Below, one piece after another: positions 41,616 to 61,044 of a stretch of 64,000 nucleotides of DNA. Made by a program: the position numbers and the translations under genes. Each line of letters starts with the position of its first letter. The stretch's first letter is position 1. The DNA is taken from the sequence record PP456879.1, one strand, 5' to 3'. Below the pieces are notes generated by a model. The model did no database searches. It was not told the origin of the DNA and saw only the letters and a list, made by a program, of their open reading frames with translations.

Positions 41616-41640
41616 GTAATATAAATCTCAAATTTTTTTT
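41616..41640 (-). promoter_or_regulatory. phiKZ-type early promoter
   Basis: AAAAAAAATTTGAGATT-TATATTAC. Confidence 0.8.
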
Positions 41641-41653
41641 AATACGAAATAAA

Positions 41654-41671
41654 GCCTCCCCGAAGGGAGGC
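41654..41671 (-). terminator. intrinsic terminator, UUCG loop
   Basis: GCCTCCC-TTCG-GGGAGGC followed by TTTATTT. Confidence 0.82.
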
Positions 41672-41678
41672 ATTTATG

Positions 41679-42371
41679 TCAATTACCACTATAGGTACCT
41701 TCAGTACCTTGTTCTTTACGTCTTACGAGGCGTTGATGAATTGCACTAAGAGCACGGTCCATTGAATTAATCACTACCTGATTCTCTTCACATGCAAATG
41801 GGCCTGCTTGATAACCTTCAAATAAATCTTTAACGATTTTAAGTAGACAGTCAGCAGTTAGGCCATTTACACCAACTTCTGGAACAAGTCCATTCTGCAT
41901 TAGGATAACACATTCAGTCAGATTATCACCAGGCATAGCAGCTGGGTTAGTCTGAGCATTATAACCAGTTACCACATAACGTTTAGTTGCACCTGATTTC
42001 TGATCAATACCACTTGCTTCAATATTTAGACCATTTTCATCAAAATGTTCATGGCCATAAATACCTTGCATAGTTACCCATCCACCATCTTCTTGATAAA
42101 TCCAATCTACCCCATTTACATGATAAGTATCACCTGGTTCAGGGTCAGTTGGAAGATCTTTAGTAGTGGTTAATGCACGGATACGCGCATATTCTTCAAT
42201 TGCAATTTGTACATCAGTTGCAGTAATTTTCTTCTCAGGTTCAGTAGCTTCATCTTGTTGAGACTTATCGCTACCTTCCTTTTGATCATTATCCATATCG
42301 GAAGAATCTACTGTACTTTTAGCTTCTTTACTTTCTAAGGAAGCTAACCACTCAAGATTAGGTTTAGACAT
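41679..42371 (-). CDS. tad1: fusion protein: acidic N-terminus, short W-rich motif, C-terminal Tad1-like cyclic-nucleotide sponge domain
   Basis: C-terminal ~115 aa (SGATKRYVV...MQNGLVPEVGVNGLTADCLLKIVKDLFEGYQAGPFACEEN...ALSAIHQRLVRRKEQGTEGT) follows the Tad1 pattern GGA..Y.I / FQ.G...E....G....LL.IV.D.L..FQAGPF...EN / AL.....R...R.....GT; SD GAGG before ATG 42371. Confidence 0.82.
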   Translation of the reverse strand: MSKPNLEWLASLESKEAKSTVDSSDMDNDQKEGSDKSQQDEATEPEKKITATDVQIAIEEYARIRALTTTKDLPTDPEPGDTYHVNGVDWIYQEDGGWVTMQGIYGHEHFDENGLNIEASGIDQKSGATKRYVVTGYNAQTNPAAMPGDNLTECVILMQNGLVPEVGVNGLTADCLLKIVKDLFEGYQAGPFACEENQVVINSMDRALSAIHQRLVRRKEQGTEGTYSGN

Positions 42372-42742: not shown

Positions 42743-51506
<8,764 letters not shown>

Positions 51507-51581: not shown

Positions 51582-53234
51582 ATGAAGAAGGCATTAGTTC
51601 CTTTTAATATTTCTTTACTTATTCCCACTAAAGAACAATTAAAGTTCTTAGGTCAAGTAAAGAGTCATGAGATATTTGAAGGTTTAGGTGGTAACTTTCA
51701 TGAAGATGGTTTGTTCTCTGTTTCCATTTTTGGAAGAGTTGGATCAACTGATCGTGAGAGTTTATTTGGATATATTCATTTAGGTTTAGAACTTATCCAT
51801 CCAGCTGTATATCGAAACTTAATTAAATTAAAAGCTTTCTATGAAGAAATTATTCTTGGTAAGGCATTTGCAGTATTTGACGAATCTATTAAAGATTTTA
51901 TCCGCGCCGATGAACTAACTGGTAAAACTGGTTATACATTCTTTTTTGATAACTGGAAACGAATTGACTTTGGGTCCACTAAGTCAGGGGTTCGGCTATC
52001 AAGGTTACAATTAATCGAAAAATATAAAGATAACTGTATTTTTAAAGACATGCTTGTAACACCAGCCGCTTATCGTGATGCAGAGATTGATGAGAATAAT
52101 CGTGTTGAGATGGATGAGATCAATGAACACTATAGGTATCTATTAAATCAGTCGTTTGGTGTACCTGATAGCTTTGGACCAAATGATGACTTGAGTATCT
52201 ATGATCGCAAACGAGTAGCAATGCAAAACACCGTATTAGCTATTTATGAACATTATGAACGACTGCTATCCGGTAAACGTGGATACATTCAATCTAAATG
52301 GGCATCCCGTCGTATTGCCAATGGTACACGTAACGTCATTAGTTCGCTAGATACTAATGCTGCTGATCTTGATTCACCTAATCGACCAACATTCAAAGAT
52401 GCCGTAGTTGGCTTACATCAAGCAGCTCGTTCAGTTGCACCGCGTACAATCTTTGCACTAAGGCAAGGTGTAGTTGGTGAAGTGTTTGATACAGTTACTA
52501 ACACTGTACAGCTCATCAATAAGAAAACACTACGTTTAGAATGGGTCGATATCTCTAACGAAGATATGGATTTATGGGGAACTCCTGAAGGGCAAGAACA
52601 AATCATCAATGAGTTAGATGTCATTGAAAAACGTTCACGTGCAATTGAAATTGCTGATCATTATCTAGCCCTTATTTACGTTGATGATAAACAGAATTTT
52701 AAAATATTCCGCAACATCGATGAGTTACCTACTAATCTAAATAAGAAATTTGTTAGACCTATTACTTATGCCGAATTAGTTTACCTTAGTGGATTAAGTA
52801 TGTGGCGAACAAACTCAGCGTTTGTTACACGATATCCTGTAGAAAACTACAATAGCTCTATCCCCTGTAAGATGTATGTTAAAACAACCGTAGTGGGTGA
52901 ATTACGTTATCCGTTAAATGATCAATGGGAACGTGATGATACGTTGGAACCAGCCTTAGAATTCCCTGTGTTTGAATTAAATAAACCAGCCCAGTGGCAT
53001 GACTCAGTATCCATCTCTCCTTCTATTCTCGCGCCATTGGGGGCGGATTTTGACGGGGACACTGTATCATTTAACGCAGTTTATTCAGAGGAAGCTATCG
53101 CTGAAACAGATGCTTTCTTTAAGAAACGTATTGCATATATACATGCCGATGGTCGACTGGCATTTAGTGTTGGTGTCCATACACTCAATTTAACTCTTCG
53201 GTACATGACTGGGGAACCCAAACAAAGGGATTAA
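51582..53234 (+). CDS. rpoC: virion RNA polymerase beta-prime subunit part (phiKZ gp180-like)
   Basis: GLFSVSIFG, GYIHL, HPAVY, SGKRGYI..K...RR, RYP, catalytic GADFDGD. Confidence 0.93.
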   Translation: MKKALVPFNISLLIPTKEQLKFLGQVKSHEIFEGLGGNFHEDGLFSVSIFGRVGSTDRESLFGYIHLGLELIHPAVYRNLIKLKAFYEEIILGKAFAVFDESIKDFIRADELTGKTGYTFFFDNWKRIDFGSTKSGVRLSRLQLIEKYKDNCIFKDMLVTPAAYRDAEIDENNRVEMDEINEHYRYLLNQSFGVPDSFGPNDDLSIYDRKRVAMQNTVLAIYEHYERLLSGKRGYIQSKWASRRIANGTRNVISSLDTNAADLDSPNRPTFKDAVVGLHQAARSVAPRTIFALRQGVVGEVFDTVTNTVQLINKKTLRLEWVDISNEDMDLWGTPEGQEQIINELDVIEKRSRAIEIADHYLALIYVDDKQNFKIFRNIDELPTNLNKKFVRPITYAELVYLSGLSMWRTNSAFVTRYPVENYNSSIPCKMYVKTTVVGELRYPLNDQWERDDTLEPALEFPVFELNKPAQWHDSVSISPSILAPLGADFDGDTVSFNAVYSEEAIAETDAFFKKRIAYIHADGRLAFSVGVHTLNLTLRYMTGEPKQRD

Positions 53235-53236
53235 TC

Positions 53237-56200
53237 ATGCGCTTAAATATTACACAGTTTCTGAAAAATTATAGTGTACGCGAATATGCTAAACTTCAGT
53301 CACCTAAGTTGCATGCTCTAAATAAACTTGATCTACCTTTCGAATCCATTTATCAGTTCTTCGATGGTAATAATGCAGTAATGGGTCCTAGTCAAACAGA
53401 CCCATTATTCTCCAAACATCAAGGTAAAGTATATATTGAGCATGTTACTGATATGCTTACATTTGAAGGTAATCCACGTAGGACTTCAAATATCCCAGCA
53501 ACAATGATTCAAGAGTTTCGCCGCCAGAACCGTTTCTTTAAACCTTTACGCAGTGATACCGGTTTTAAATTATCAAACCAGAACATTTTGGTAATGAATT
53601 ATAATTTAATTAACCCTCAATGGAATTATATGGCTTCTTATAAAGCTACATGGTTCCGTTGGTCAAATGACATGCGTACATTCTGGAGTGGCGTAGCGGC
53701 TGCATGTGAACGTTTTCCTGGTTGGAACCAGTTCATTGATGTACACTTACCTGAGTTAGTTCCACCTCCTTCTTCTTTTAATAAACTACGAGGGGGTTTA
53801 ACTCAAGATCTAGCTAATCAATTCAATACACCTGATATTCTAAATATATTTGATTTAGTTCGCTGGGTTTCTGATGATCGTGAAAGTTCTTTCATGAATG
53901 TCATCGATGCTAAGTATTACGGTAACATTAATCTTTTATTCCGTGTACAAAGTTCATTCTTTGTTATTAACTTAGGGATGCTTGATCAATGGCGTCGTGA
54001 TCCAGAAATTAAAGATGATAAAGGTTATGATACCCAGCAAATAGCTAGGCGCCTTATTTCACTAGTATCAGCGATGGTTGAATATAACCAAGGTAATACT
54101 TCATTAATTAAAGAAGATACGCCTATCTTTAATGAAGATATTATTGTTGATGAAGAAACTCCGGTTAGTTATGAAGAAGGTGAAGCAGAAGAGGTTGAGG
54201 ATGTTGAGTCTAATAACGTTGAAGAAGAAGTAACTGAAGTTGATGTTATTGATGATGTTCAATTTGACCCAACCAACTTAACTAACTTAATTGATATTGG
54301 CGCAATTGAGGTAACATATACCCCACCACCAGAAAGTGATCTTGAGGTAACAAAGCTTATCATTGAAAAAGATCCACTGGAATCTTCACCTTCTCGCCAA
54401 ATTAAAGAAGAGAAGGAACTCATTGTAACAGATGTACCAGAAGATGAGTTATTCATCAATACTGAAGTTGATGAAGAAGATAAACTAATCGATGCCATTA
54501 GAGCTAAAGCATACGACATGTATCGCGTGAATATGATTTCTGCGAATACATTCGAGCAAGCTCAAGAAGATTCGATTATGTATCGTCGTCTACCTGATCC
54601 ATTTACCGATCCTAATGATGAATCAGTAGAACCTATGACGATCGCTGAGGCGATGGAATATCATCCAGATGATCTTAAGATTCCAGAAGACACCACTTTT
54701 GAAGATAAGCCAACCATTGTTGATAAATCAATGTTGGGTAGTAAGTTAAAAGCCATCCAACGCAAATACAACAAGGTCTTATTAAAGAAAGATATTTTAA
54801 ACAGTGTGTTATCTGTTCAGAAACAAGGCGTATCAGTAACTAATTACAAAATTGAAACTGTACGCGATTCTGGTAACCATTACCAAATCCACAAAGTTAC
54901 ATTAAAGCCTATTCGTGGTAGAAGTTCACAAGTAATGTTCCGTATCCCTGTCATTGATAATGACGGTAGGTTCATGTCTAATGGGGTAACATATCGCCAA
55001 CGTTTACAACGTGCTGATATTCCAATTCGTAAAGTTAATCCACGTAAAGTTGCATTGACCTCTTATTATAATAAGACCTTTGTGACCAGATCTGAACGTG
55101 CTGAAAACAACTTTGATAATTGGTTAATCAGAGCGATTACCAACCGTGCATTAGATGGAAGTGATATGTCTGTACATTCAGTTACCTATGCTGAATTAGA
55201 TCAATCCAACTATGTTCTACCAAGGGTGTACACTACTTTAGGAACAGCTTTTAAAGGCTTCCATAATCACCGTAATGTGTTCTATTTTAATTTCAAAGAT
55301 CGTAATGAATTCTTTGCAAAACAAGGATTACATATCGAAGATTATGAAACTGATGATTTGATAATGGTGGGGTTCAATGGCACTGATGCTATCTTGTTAG
55401 ATAAGAATTCCATCTTTTACATGAAAACAGGTAATGAGCTAGAACCTATTGGTACCATTACAGATATACTTGGCTTAGATCTAACCAAAGCGCCGTTAGA
55501 AGCTATTCTAATGTCAATTGGTGGTAAAGAGCTACCATTAGGTTTCATTTTAGCATATCACCATGGCTTAAACAATCTACTTAAGAAGTTGAATGTTAAT
55601 TATCAGCGTCATCAGCGTGGTACCAGGATTGTTGTCAATAGTACGGATTATACATTAGCGTTCGCTGATGAGATCCTAGTATTTGATCGAGCTGATTATA
55701 AAGCAATGCTTGTATTAAGTGGACTCAAACGTTATCATAAATCACTGCGGCGTTATTCTGTTTATGATTTCAATAAACGAGATGTTTACTTCAGGGTTCT
55801 TGAAGAAGCTGGATTAAGTAATAGATTTACACGTGATATTGATACACTCTTCTCAGCATGGGTCGATCCAATCACTGAGGGTCTACTCAAGGAGATGGGT
55901 GAACCAACTACTTTTGAAGGATTGCTTTATCGGTCTGTCGAGTTATTAACGAACGACTGGAGTCCAGCAGAAGTAGATGGTGCATATATGCGCTATCGTG
56001 GTTATGAGCGCATGGCAGGGGCTATTTTTAATGAACTCAATAGAGCGGTACGTGTATTTAATATGCGTAATGGTGGGTCAGTGCAAACTGTCGAGTTAGA
56101 TCCACACGTGATCTGGCGCAAGATTGTACAAGATCCGACAGTAGCCACTATTGAAGATTCTAACCCCATTGCAAATATCCGTGAACAAGAAGCGATGACT

Positions 56201-57592
56201 TATCGTGGAGATGGTGGGCGCGGTTCAACTTCAATGGTTGCACGTACACGTATTTACGGTGAAGCGGATGTTGGTGTGGTTAGTGAATCAACTGTTGACT
56301 CAGGTGACGTTGGCGTTATTGCTTACTTAGTACCTGATGCTAACTTTGTAAACATGCGTGGTGTTACGCGTATGTTTGATCCAAAGACAGATGGACCAGC
56401 TAGACTACTTTCAACTAGTGCACTGCTTGGTGTTGCAACCGAACATGATGACCCTAAGCGAATTAACTTTATCTCAATTCAGCAGCAGCAAGGTATTTAT
56501 GCTGATGGGTATACAGTTACACCAGTTCGTACAGGCTATGAACAAATCATAGCCCAAAGGACTAGTTCTATCTTTGCTGTAGCAGCAGAACAAGATGGTG
56601 AGGTTGTAGCTATTGATGAATATGGTATCCAAGTTAAATATGCCGATGGTAATGTATTTGGATATCAATTAGGTACAGTTCATGGCACAGCAGCTGGTGT
56701 TAACTATCCACACATTCTTGTTACCTCATTAAAGAAAGGTGATAAGTTTAAACGTGGAGATACTATCACATATAACAAACGTTATTTCTCTGAAGATAGG
56801 TATACGCCTGGGCAAGTATTATGGAAAGCCGGTTGTATGGCTGTTGTAGCATTTGATGATAACCTTGACACTTTAGAAGACGGTTCAGTTATTTCTGAAG
56901 ACCTAGCTAAAAGGTTAAATACTCAAACAACTGCAATCAAGAATATCGATGTTAGGTTTGATCAGACTATTCGAGATATGGTGAAAGTTGGGGATCATGT
57001 CGACTTAAATTCAATTCTATGTATAATTGAAGATCCTGAAACAGCTGCTCACTCACTATATGACGAGGCATCTATTGAGACATTACGCAAACTATCAGCA
57101 TATTCGCCACGTGCTAAGCTCGTAGGTACAGTATCAAAGATTGAATGCTTCTATCATGGTGAAATAGACGATATGACACCAAGTTTACAAGCATTAGCTA
57201 ATACGTCAGATAAACAACGCGCTGAACGAGCTAAATCATTGAAAGAACCTACTTTCACTGGACAAGTAGATGCTAACTATCGAGTGAAAGGACGAGCCTT
57301 AGAATATGACCACATGATTATTCGAGTGTATATCGATCATGATATCCCATGTGGTGTTGGAGATAAAGGCGTAGTAGCTAACCAGATGAAAACGGTATTC
57401 TCCCGTGTAATGACTGGACGTAATGAAACTGAAGATGGCCGTAATATTGATCTACTATTCGGTAATACATCGGTAGAAGAACGAATGGTTCTATCTCCTA
57501 AAATCATTGCTACAACAACTGGTATCTTGTGGGCAGCTGGAAAACATCTTGTAGCTGTATATAGAGGAAACACTAATGCAAAAGCTAAGTAA
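53237..57592 (+). CDS. rpoB: virion RNA polymerase beta subunit (phiKZ gp178-like)
   Basis: 1451 aa; SNGVTY..RLQR, DSGDVG, HDDPKR.NF...QQQ, LEDG.VIS, GVGDKG..ANQMKTV, ERM. Confidence 0.92.
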   Translation: MRLNITQFLKNYSVREYAKLQSPKLHALNKLDLPFESIYQFFDGNNAVMGPSQTDPLFSKHQGKVYIEHVTDMLTFEGNPRRTSNIPATMIQEFRRQNRFFKPLRSDTGFKLSNQNILVMNYNLINPQWNYMASYKATWFRWSNDMRTFWSGVAAACERFPGWNQFIDVHLPELVPPPSSFNKLRGGLTQDLANQFNTPDILNIFDLVRWVSDDRESSFMNVIDAKYYGNINLLFRVQSSFFVINLGMLDQWRRDPEIKDDKGYDTQQIARRLISLVSAMVEYNQGNTSLIKEDTPIFNEDIIVDEETPVSYEEGEAEEVEDVESNNVEEEVTEVDVIDDVQFDPTNLTNLIDIGAIEVTYTPPPESDLEVTKLIIEKDPLESSPSRQIKEEKELIVTDVPEDELFINTEVDEEDKLIDAIRAKAYDMYRVNMISANTFEQAQEDSIMYRRLPDPFTDPNDESVEPMTIAEAMEYHPDDLKIPEDTTFEDKPTIVDKSMLGSKLKAIQRKYNKVLLKKDILNSVLSVQKQGVSVTNYKIETVRDSGNHYQIHKVTLKPIRGRSSQVMFRIPVIDNDGRFMSNGVTYRQRLQRADIPIRKVNPRKVALTSYYNKTFVTRSERAENNFDNWLIRAITNRALDGSDMSVHSVTYAELDQSNYVLPRVYTTLGTAFKGFHNHRNVFYFNFKDRNEFFAKQGLHIEDYETDDLIMVGFNGTDAILLDKNSIFYMKTGNELEPIGTITDILGLDLTKAPLEAILMSIGGKELPLGFILAYHHGLNNLLKKLNVNYQRHQRGTRIVVNSTDYTLAFADEILVFDRADYKAMLVLSGLKRYHKSLRRYSVYDFNKRDVYFRVLEEAGLSNRFTRDIDTLFSAWVDPITEGLLKEMGEPTTFEGLLYRSVELLTNDWSPAEVDGAYMRYRGYERMAGAIFNELNRAVRVFNMRNGGSVQTVELDPHVIWRKIVQDPTVATIEDSNPIANIREQEAMTYRGDGGRGSTSMVARTRIYGEADVGVVSESTVDSGDVGVIAYLVPDANFVNMRGVTRMFDPKTDGPARLLSTSALLGVATEHDDPKRINFISIQQQQGIYADGYTVTPVRTGYEQIIAQRTSSIFAVAAEQDGEVVAIDEYGIQVKYADGNVFGYQLGTVHGTAAGVNYPHILVTSLKKGDKFKRGDTITYNKRYFSEDRYTPGQVLWKAGCMAVVAFDDNLDTLEDGSVISEDLAKRLNTQTTAIKNIDVRFDQTIRDMVKVGDHVDLNSILCIIEDPETAAHSLYDEASIETLRKLSAYSPRAKLVGTVSKIECFYHGEIDDMTPSLQALANTSDKQRAERAKSLKEPTFTGQVDANYRVKGRALEYDHMIIRVYIDHDIPCGVGDKGVVANQMKTVFSRVMTGRNETEDGRNIDLLFGNTSVEERMVLSPKIIATTTGILWAAGKHLVAVYRGNTNAKAK

Positions 57593-60231: not shown

Positions 60232-61044
60232 ATGCAACCATATTCTAATTTTTCTGGTTTGCAACAGCGTACTAATAACCAAGTAGTTATCGGCAGTGAT
60301 ATGTTAGCCGGTACTAATAAAAAAGGTGTATTAGTACCTGATGCGGATGGTTACTATCTAACTCCACTAGGAGCTTATGGTACCCGAAATTCAGCTGGTA
60401 TGTTCTATGAAATGGCATCCGGCGTATCTATGTTTAATCCAGACTCACCTTTAATGCGCCGTGTTAAAAAGGGTGTTCTATTCATGGAATACAAACACCC
60501 TGAACCCTATCGTAAAGATGGCACACGGATGAATGAACATGAGTACCTAATGCGAATTCGTCAAATCGATGATGATCGTGTGTGTGCGCATATTAAGGAA
60601 CTTATTCTGGTTGATTCTACAGATGAGAAAGGTCTTCCTATTAAACTAGTACTTGGCAAATGCAAACCATACGGTCCTTTTGGTAAGTACTTCGAAGCAT
60701 CTATTACCAATCCTTCTCAGAATACTTATTGCTCGGTAAGGTCAATAACTCAAGATGATCCTATGCGCGGTATCAAATATACCCGTGAGATTTCAACTTG
60801 GGATATGGTTGGGGAAGGTGGTATTTACGGTGCTAATAAATGGAATTCCCCTGCATTAGAGAACTATGAAGATCAATTAATGGTTATCACGCCTGATACT
60901 CTATATCAGGTACAGCGTGAACGTGAACGTCAAATTAACATGGGTTTTGAATGTTCTGATATCACCAATGTGACAGATCTAGCGAAAAGTCTTGGCTGGG
61001 ATATTTCACCAGTTAAACATAGGCGACCTGGCTTCATGCGTTAA
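60232..61044 (+). CDS. prohead (head maturation) serine protease, phiKZ gp175-like
   Basis: 270 aa; EYKHP (H89) and YCSVRS (S168) candidate catalytic residues; ALE at 208-210 is a likely autocleavage site (S/A/G-X-E specificity). Confidence 0.88.
   Translation: MQPYSNFSGLQQRTNNQVVIGSDMLAGTNKKGVLVPDADGYYLTPLGAYGTRNSAGMFYEMASGVSMFNPDSPLMRRVKKGVLFMEYKHPEPYRKDGTRMNEHEYLMRIRQIDDDRVCAHIKELILVDSTDEKGLPIKLVLGKCKPYGPFGKYFEASITNPSQNTYCSVRSITQDDPMRGIKYTREISTWDMVGEGGIYGANKWNSPALENYEDQLMVITPDTLYQVQRERERQINMGFECSDITNVTDLAKSLGWDISPVKHRRPGFMR

Follow-up and report, generated by a model that had tools for sequence, protein, structure and literature searches.

The stretch of DNA analysed here (the window, 64,000 nucleotides of sequence record PP456879.1) contains gp184, a gene of the giant Pseudomonas phage phiKZ that encodes a head protein with a Tad1-type C-terminal half. 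The product encoded in the window is 100% identical to PHIKZ184 (NP_803750.1, deposited with 230 amino acids), and it matches residue for residue chain I, named 'gp184', of the phiKZ capsid structure (PDB code 8y6v). The annotated reference has PHIKZ184 at exactly this locus, labelled 'structural protein', and phrog_22140 matches gp184 over its full length. Over 4 kb around the gene, the identity to phiKZ and closely related phages is 99.9-100%. Translation starts at the ATG at position 42371, and a GAGG situated 5 nucleotides upstream overlaps the stop of the 101-residue gp183. A first-pass annotation of this DNA had numbered the protein over 239 amino acids, which is the product of a mechanical extension to a TTG in the longest open reading frame; the deposited protein has 230 residues, and its numbering is used here. 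The features of the locus are collected in Table 1.

Table 1. Features at and around the gp184 locus (positions in the window)
Feature	Position	Strand	Description
PHIKZ184 (gp184)	41679..42371	(-)	230 aa + stop; leader, capsid wedge and Tad1-like sponge domain in one precursor
Acidic leader, residues 1-59	42195..42371	(-)	mostly predicted disordered; composition, S/A/G-x-E sites
Helix, then W-rich beta unit, residues 60-108	42048..42194	(-)	ends in G-H-E 106-108
Tad1-like sponge domain, residues 109-230	41682..42047	(-)	beta-sheet, then two helices, C-terminal lid motif
gp183, 101 aa	42379..42684	(-)	phrog_27341; stop overlaps gp184 ribosome-binding site
gp182, 664 aa, first gene of unit	42743..44737	(-)	baseplate spacer protein
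Intrinsic-terminator-like hairpin	41654..41671	(-)	8 nt past the gp184 stop; seven-pair stem, six G-C; T-rich tail
Terminator-like hairpin after gp181	44758..44785	(-)	twelve-pair stem; upstream bound of the gp182-gp184 unit
TATATTAC with AT-rich upstream element	41616..41623	(-)	in front of gp185; outside the gp184 unit
gp175 head maturation protease	60232..61044	(+)	identical to PHIKZ175; phrog_3014 at E 3e-90

The open reading frames confirm that gp184 is preceded by a gp182-like gene and the gene for a 101-residue protein. gp182 is the baseplate spacer (PMC13250141) and shares 64% identity with the gene at the same position in a related locus, L002. No homologue of gp183 was found at the same position in L002, where two unrelated small genes take its place; in the window, gp183 is translationally coupled to gp184. 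Two other jumbo-phage contigs show the order gp181-like gene, gp182-like gene, one or two small unrelated genes and Tad1 fusion, with a thymidylate kinase further along. gp184 is apparently co-transcribed with the baseplate genes gp182 and gp183, in what would be a unit bounded by two terminators and free of any early-promoter-like motif. The first-pass annotation had placed gp184 at the end of a tail operon; the gene does close a baseplate gene cluster, but its product is a protein of the head and not of the tail. The gp175 protease, the enzyme reported to process gp184, is encoded in the window as had been stated.

A copy of TATATTAC lies beyond the gp184 terminator, at 41616, as described earlier. 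As a promoter, TATATTAC was rejected by count, since the octamer occurs 8 times in the window and 7.3 copies are expected, and no confirmation of a TATATTAC consensus for phiKZ was found in the open literature. What supports a promoter is the extended context that some copies have in common: the copy at 41616 shares a longer upstream element with at least two others, those at 2865 and 12237, and at all three minus-strand sites this consists of an A/T run and then TTTGAGAT or TTTGAAAT upstream of the octamer. Each of the three copies is situated just past a terminator-like G+C hairpin, and the elements look like a terminator-promoter module placed between transcription units.

Elsewhere in the window, the HNH endonuclease PHIKZ179 is missing. 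In reference phiKZ, compared at L006 9821-10894, this gene separates gp178 and gp180, both of which encode subunits of the virion RNA polymerase. At this position the window falls about 1.4 kb short of the reference, and a 550-residue open reading frame (51582..53234, plus strand; 490 residues in the reference) directly abuts gp178 (53237..57592, plus strand).

The Tad1 domain and its ligand pockets

The likeness of the C-terminal part of gp184 to Tad1, on which the first-pass annotation was built, is borne out by single-sequence search, profile and fold. In a phmmer (HMMER) search against 177,635 sequences, residues 117-226 of gp184 matched six distinct solved Tad1 chains with E values of 2e-6 to 4e-6, which well exceeds what chance alone would produce. 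A profile made from 19 relatives and searched against the PDB found Tad1 at E values of 4e-12 to 7e-11, and otherwise only gp184 itself. The Foldseek comparison with Tad1 structures that had been suggested as a check was performed with an AlphaFold model, and the top 19 PDB matches are all Tad1 (E 5e-6 to 4e-4), with TMt values of 0.52-0.69 that reach at least 0.60 for 18 of the 19. The AGPF..EN motif is found at residues 189-197 and the C-terminal letters quoted in the annotation at residues 212-226, and HMMER aligns both with the same motifs in solved Tad1 chains. Residues from about 113 to 230 of gp184 are a genuine Tad1 domain.

The AlphaFold model of gp184 has a mean pLDDT of 66.5. Between residues 121 and 220 the values for blocks of ten residues are mostly 76-95, with a dip to 58 in block 161-170. 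The domain starts at about residue 109-113 and consists of strands 116-122, 129-135 and 153-158, followed by the long helices 173-189 and 195-221. Pfam and NCBIfam scans of gp184 and of its halves gave no significant family, and a local scan of gp184 against Pfam PF24729 (Acb2_Tad1_hairpin) gave no match even at an E value of 10. Precomputed matches to PF24729, marked as weak, exist for 15 of 19 relatives.

The pocket of CbTad1 that accommodates gcADPR and cyclic dinucleotides is formed by residues Phe-82, Asn-92, Arg-109 and Arg-113 (bioRxiv 10.1101/2023.11.15.567273). In the HMMER alignments these correspond to Tyr-187, Asn-197, Arg-214 and Arg-218 of gp184. Among 157 relatives, Asn-197 and Arg-214 are invariant and Arg-218 almost invariant; 153 carry an aromatic residue at position 187, and the other four a leucine. 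The cyclic-trinucleotide pocket involves Arg-90 and Thr-97 in CbTad1 and Arg-88 and Thr-95 in CmTad1 (bioRxiv 10.1101/2023.11.15.567273). Both residues are replaced in gp184, by Glu-195 and Asn-202, and the alignments with CbTad1 and with CmTad1 give the same positions. The arginine of this pocket is absent from all 20 phiKZ-like relatives and present in only 9 of 83 stand-alone relatives; judged by this residue, the trinucleotide pocket characterises a sub-group rather than the whole family. The residues at the interface of the CmTad1 hexamer, a trimer of dimers (Gln-98, Glu-99, Met-102, Trp-103 and Lys-106), correspond to Asp-205, Arg-206, Ser-209, Ala-210 and Gln-213, so that the clostridial interface residues are not kept in gp184, a comparison made by alignment, from which an oligomeric state cannot be derived.

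Because the residues of the first pocket are kept and Glu-195 and Asn-202 take the place of those of the second, gp184 is predicted to bind gcADPR or cyclic dinucleotides and not, in the canonical mode, cyclic trinucleotides. A cyclic-trinucleotide pocket of the type seen in clostridial Tad1 is probably absent. The first-pass annotation had envisaged a sponge for both gcADPR and the cyclic oligonucleotides of CBASS, including trinucleotides; the part concerning gcADPR and cyclic dinucleotides agrees with the conserved residues, but the replacement of both pocket residues makes trinucleotide binding doubtful. It has been reported that a cAAA-producing CBASS system still signals during infection by phiKZ with tad1 intact, and that a phiKZ nlp1 mutant is restricted by cAAA-producing CBASS and rescued by Acb2. 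The predicted loss of the trinucleotide pocket fits this persistence of cAAA-CBASS signalling. Sequestration of gcADPR and inhibition of Thoeris by the phiKZ Tad1 are asserted only by secondary sources that rely on Li et al. 2024, namely 10.1101/2025.11.23.690004 and PMC13282480; the bioRxiv version of Li et al. 2024 (Nature) contains no mention of phiKZ.

Leader, protease sites and capsid wedge

The first 59 residues of gp184 contain 15 acidic residues (D+E) and 7 basic ones (K+R). In the model the pLDDT is below 50 for residues 1-49, and a helix covers residues 51-62. The protein contains S/A/G-x-E sites, the type of site cleaved by the gp175 protease, at residues 11-13 (SLE), 14-16, 42-44 (ATE), 57-59 (AIE) and 106-108 (GHE), the last of which is situated in a low-confidence linker spanning residues 105-113. 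With 7 such sites observed and 4.6 +/- 1.8 in shuffled sequences, an enrichment by count was rejected. Two positions are conserved among the phiKZ-like relatives. A site within 25 residues before the domain is present in 20 of 20, where 0.44 are expected per sequence, a figure that is not a probability because the sequences are related; a site within the first 25 residues, near residue 12, is present in 19 of 20. The acidic leader with its SLE, ATE, AIE and GHE sites is therefore present as first described and conserved at two positions, but the sites are not enriched in number.

Between the leader and the domain, the model has three short Trp- and Tyr-rich strands at residues 82-100. This W-rich segment occurs in only 4 of 19 aligned sequences, the window protein and the proteins P0002, P0003 and P0004. 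The capsid structure 8y6v contains just 34 modelled residues of gp184, and a model of residues 1-108 matches all of them (100% identity, TMt 0.84). The ordered piece bound to the capsid therefore belongs to the N-terminal half and not to the sponge domain. As the modelled part is described as consisting mainly of beta-strands (PMC11297242), it is likely the W-rich unit, which would place the 34 residues within residues 60-108.

The W-rich segment had earlier been compared with the short repeats of virion fibre proteins. No fibre protein was matched: the structural search with the model of residues 1-108 returned only 8y6v chain I as a match, and the segment belongs to the half that carries the 34-residue wedge. 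Choline-binding and pacifastin-like hairpins appeared with E values of about 1 and were treated as noise. An N-terminal targeting signal common to the head proteins encoded in the window was looked for, and none was seen.

The S/A/G-x-E site at the junction is also kept in the relatives that have no W-rich wedge (15 of 19 aligned), which suggests that cleavage there releases the domain. G-H-E 106-108 is the candidate position for this release. If gp175 instead cut only within the leader, wedge and sponge would form one capsid-anchored chain, and a fragment of residues 60-230 would be injected after detaching. The modelled part of gp184 is shorter than the cleavage product (PMC11297242), which fits an extension beyond the wedge on either side and thus agrees with such a chain. 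We nevertheless consider this arrangement rather unlikely, since relatives that have no wedge also keep the G-x-E immediately ahead of the domain, and the C-termini are described as liberated by the protease (10.1101/2025.11.23.690004).

Delivery of the sponge and its dose

The processing, the capsid location and the injection of gp184 are already known. gp184 is a minor capsid protein in the vertex-binding complex under the vertices, where it occupies the space that separates gp86 from one capsid subunit, and the capsid map shows five such complexes per vertex (PMC11297242). Chain I of 8y6v carries the exact gp184 sequence, so that the protein is physically present in the capsid, as the proposal of a packaged sponge demands. 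For processing by gp175, the same study (PMC11297242) reports a verified cleavage site in gp184 and cites a 2012 proteolysis study. Injection was validated by western blot of the FLAG-tagged virion protein in cells in which translation was blocked by gentamicin (PMC10449902). AntiDefenseFinder calls a single anti-defence gene in phiKZ, namely Tad1 (PMC11724313). A transposon-mutagenesis preprint from 2025 names orf184 'tad1' and finds it dispensable; it also states a model in which the N-termini are wedged in the capsid, with C-termini that the head protease sets free and that are injected in the round that follows (10.1101/2025.11.23.690004). A review from 2026 describes Tad1 as injected by phiKZ and as blocking CBASS and Thoeris (PMC13282480). 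The combined picture of a packaged, matured and injected sponge that the first-pass annotation drew from the sequence is thus found in both of these sources; the interpretation is supported and essentially right, but it had already been published, and the case is a rediscovery.

Taken as a whole, the account in which gp184 is the Tad1 of phiKZ, made as a three-part precursor, matured, packaged and injected, is in our judgement very probable. The precursor enters the prohead, as shown by others, and is cut by gp175 at S/A/G-x-E sites; cleavage has been shown by others, and G-H-E 106-108 is the candidate for the exact site. A small W-rich beta piece from the N-terminal half would remain as a wedge under each vertex, between gp86 and the major capsid protein, a location shown by others, and the C-terminal 120-odd residues would exit the head together with the DNA when the next cell is infected, in keeping with the injection that others have shown. 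In the new cell, before any phage expression, the domain would bind gcADPR or cyclic dinucleotides through Tyr-187, Asn-197, Arg-214 and Arg-218, as predicted from the residue mapping; binding is reported by others. This binding would blunt Thoeris and CBASS signalling, probably without a clostridial-type pocket for cyclic trinucleotides, to judge from Glu-195 and Asn-202. For the exact cut and the ligand range, the basis is secondary citations together with the mapping of residues.

If gp184 is confined to the five sites per vertex, about 55-60 copies are estimated per virion, and the same number injected would correspond to about 0.1 micromolar in the cell. The affinity measured for one Tad1-gcADPR pair is 241 nM (bioRxiv 10.1101/2023.11.15.567273). 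The estimated concentration is not above this value, and therefore what is injected may, by itself, suffice to buffer only the earliest signals.

The low number of copies would also agree with a sponge whose main action comes late in infection from newly made protein, as uncleaved cytoplasmic precursor or as excess, and that holds down abortive-infection signals until lysis, with packaging of minor importance. The gene is situated in a unit with late-type structural genes, and the domain should fold and bind with or without removal of the leader. Thoeris and CBASS, however, signal early to mid infection, when a late product is absent, and the conserved protease site at the junction together with the demonstrated injection points to selection for delivery. 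We hold a mainly late action to be improbable, and the late-made and injected modes are not exclusive.

That gp184 is mainly a capsid cement of the vertex complex, with a structural or vestigial Tad1-like domain and no role in counter-defence, agrees with its being built into the vertex-binding complex, where it fills the gap between gp86 and a capsid subunit, and with the 34 ordered residues, which would leave the remainder as a flexible internal appendage, but it is very hard to reconcile with a gene that tolerates many transposon insertions and whose mutants compete normally (10.1101/2025.11.23.690004), with ligand-pocket residues that are invariant across relatives, with a domain that is kept in 19 of 19 aligned sequences when 15 of them have no wedge, and with the injection of the tagged protein.

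Injection as a matured virion protein sets gp184 apart from the Tad1 proteins of Clostridium prophages and Bacillus phages (7uav, 7uaw, 8smd and 8kbb-8kbh), which are made early from the genome. The domains are homologous and have the same fold, with the same residues in the gcADPR/cyclic-dinucleotide pocket and a similar C-terminal lid motif. gp184 alone has the 108-residue N-terminal leader and capsid wedge, and it differs further in the Glu-195 and Asn-202 that replace the Arg and Thr of the trinucleotide pocket and in the residues at the hexamer interface. Within phiKZ, gp93, gp95 and gp97 are, like gp184, precursors cut by gp175 that are in part bound to the capsid's inner surface and are ejected into the host. 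These three have in common a helical C-terminal domain of the PF12699 type, in contrast to the sponge domain of gp184 with its known ligand pocket.

The internal proteins of phage T4, such as IPI*, carry an N-terminal capsid-targeting sequence, are cut by the head protease, are injected and block host defence. The logic is the same as for gp184, with a targeting leader, maturation by the prohead protease and action before phage expression, although the sequences and folds are unrelated. IPI* binds and inhibits a restriction enzyme; for gp184, the predicted target of sequestration is a small-molecule signal. The anti-CBASS sponge Acb2 also acts by sequestering signals, and the Pfam element Acb2_Tad1_hairpin is common to Acb2 and Tad1-type relatives. 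No significant match in sequence or fold was found between gp184 and Acb2, and Acb2 binds cAAA, which gp184, given its replaced pocket residues, probably does not.

Tad1-like domains behind other N-terminal modules

The full-length gp184 protein was found in no genomes but those of Phikzvirus (47 records). Matches to the domain without the rest of the protein come from PhiPA3, where it occurs in two places, from Phabio and other related Pseudomonas jumbo phages, from Agrobacterium and Rhizobium phages of 150 kb and from many Bacillus phages. In each of NC_028999.1 (PhiPA3), PP968062.1 and OU343167.1, the C-terminal domain of gp184 has two separate matching places, and therefore these Pseudomonas jumbo phages may encode two Tad1-like genes.

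A word-index search with the C-terminal domain alone gave at least 7 candidates; a profile search was used instead, which gave 4,402 relatives at E <=0.001. Among these 4,402, the best 148 that do not belong to the phiKZ-like set include 54 with at least 60 amino acids N-terminal to the domain, and in these extended relatives the domain is always C-terminal. The first-pass annotation regarded Tad1 proteins as stand-alone, which does not hold for these 54. Another 13 relatives have instead a C-terminal extension of at least 40 amino acids.

In P0100, P0098, P0112, P0047, P0093, P0079 and P0136, the Tad1-like domain is at the end of proteins of 300-590 amino acids. The N terminus of 7 of the 54 extended relatives matches Pfam PhiKZ_MCP, at profile positions of about 143-270 of 635 and with E values down to 1e-24. 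The match of these fusions to phrog_3231 covers positions of about 223-355 of 746, and the matched region corresponds in gp120 to the linker and the first half of the insertion domain. One such fusion, on a 254-kb viral contig (L005 8001-9131), is situated among small genes and adjoins a gene for a cyclophilin-type isomerase. Other modules that precede the Tad1-like domain are phrog_8902 in P0067, phrog_11049 or phrog_872 in P0158 and Phage_gp49_66 (PF13876) in one further member of alignment A2. The phage that encodes P0012 has a separate gene of 373 amino acids (9902-11023 in L002 and L003) with a weak PhiKZ_MCP match and without a Tad1 domain, four genes downstream of its Tad1-like gene.

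Large phages may hang a C-terminal Tad1-type sponge on interchangeable N-terminal modules that target it to the virion, a reading that we put forward tentatively and rate at somewhat below even. The modules would be an acidic leader that contains protease sites in the phiKZ-like phages, this same leader together with the W-rich wedge in Phikzvirus, and a fragment of the major capsid protein comprising linker and insertion domain in others. No description of such a family-level pattern was found in the literature searched, which did not include the main Tad1 paper.

During the first minutes of infection a nucleus-forming phage produces no proteins of its own and must nonetheless survive signalling immunity, and a sponge that is injected with the DNA answers this puzzle. 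The answer had already been proposed and largely demonstrated for gp184, so the present finding adds confirmation and no discovery. Beyond the published findings, as far as these were found, the conserved and replaced pocket residues suggest that the phiKZ clade keeps the gcADPR/dinucleotide pocket and lacks the trinucleotide pocket. If this is true, gcADPR and cyclic dinucleotides would be the ligands for which the gp184 clade is specialised, with the trinucleotide pocket lost. That this domain also follows different N-terminal modules, fragments of a capsid protein among them, may be a new side observation, and if the swapping of modules is true, signal sponges that are packaged in advance would be common.
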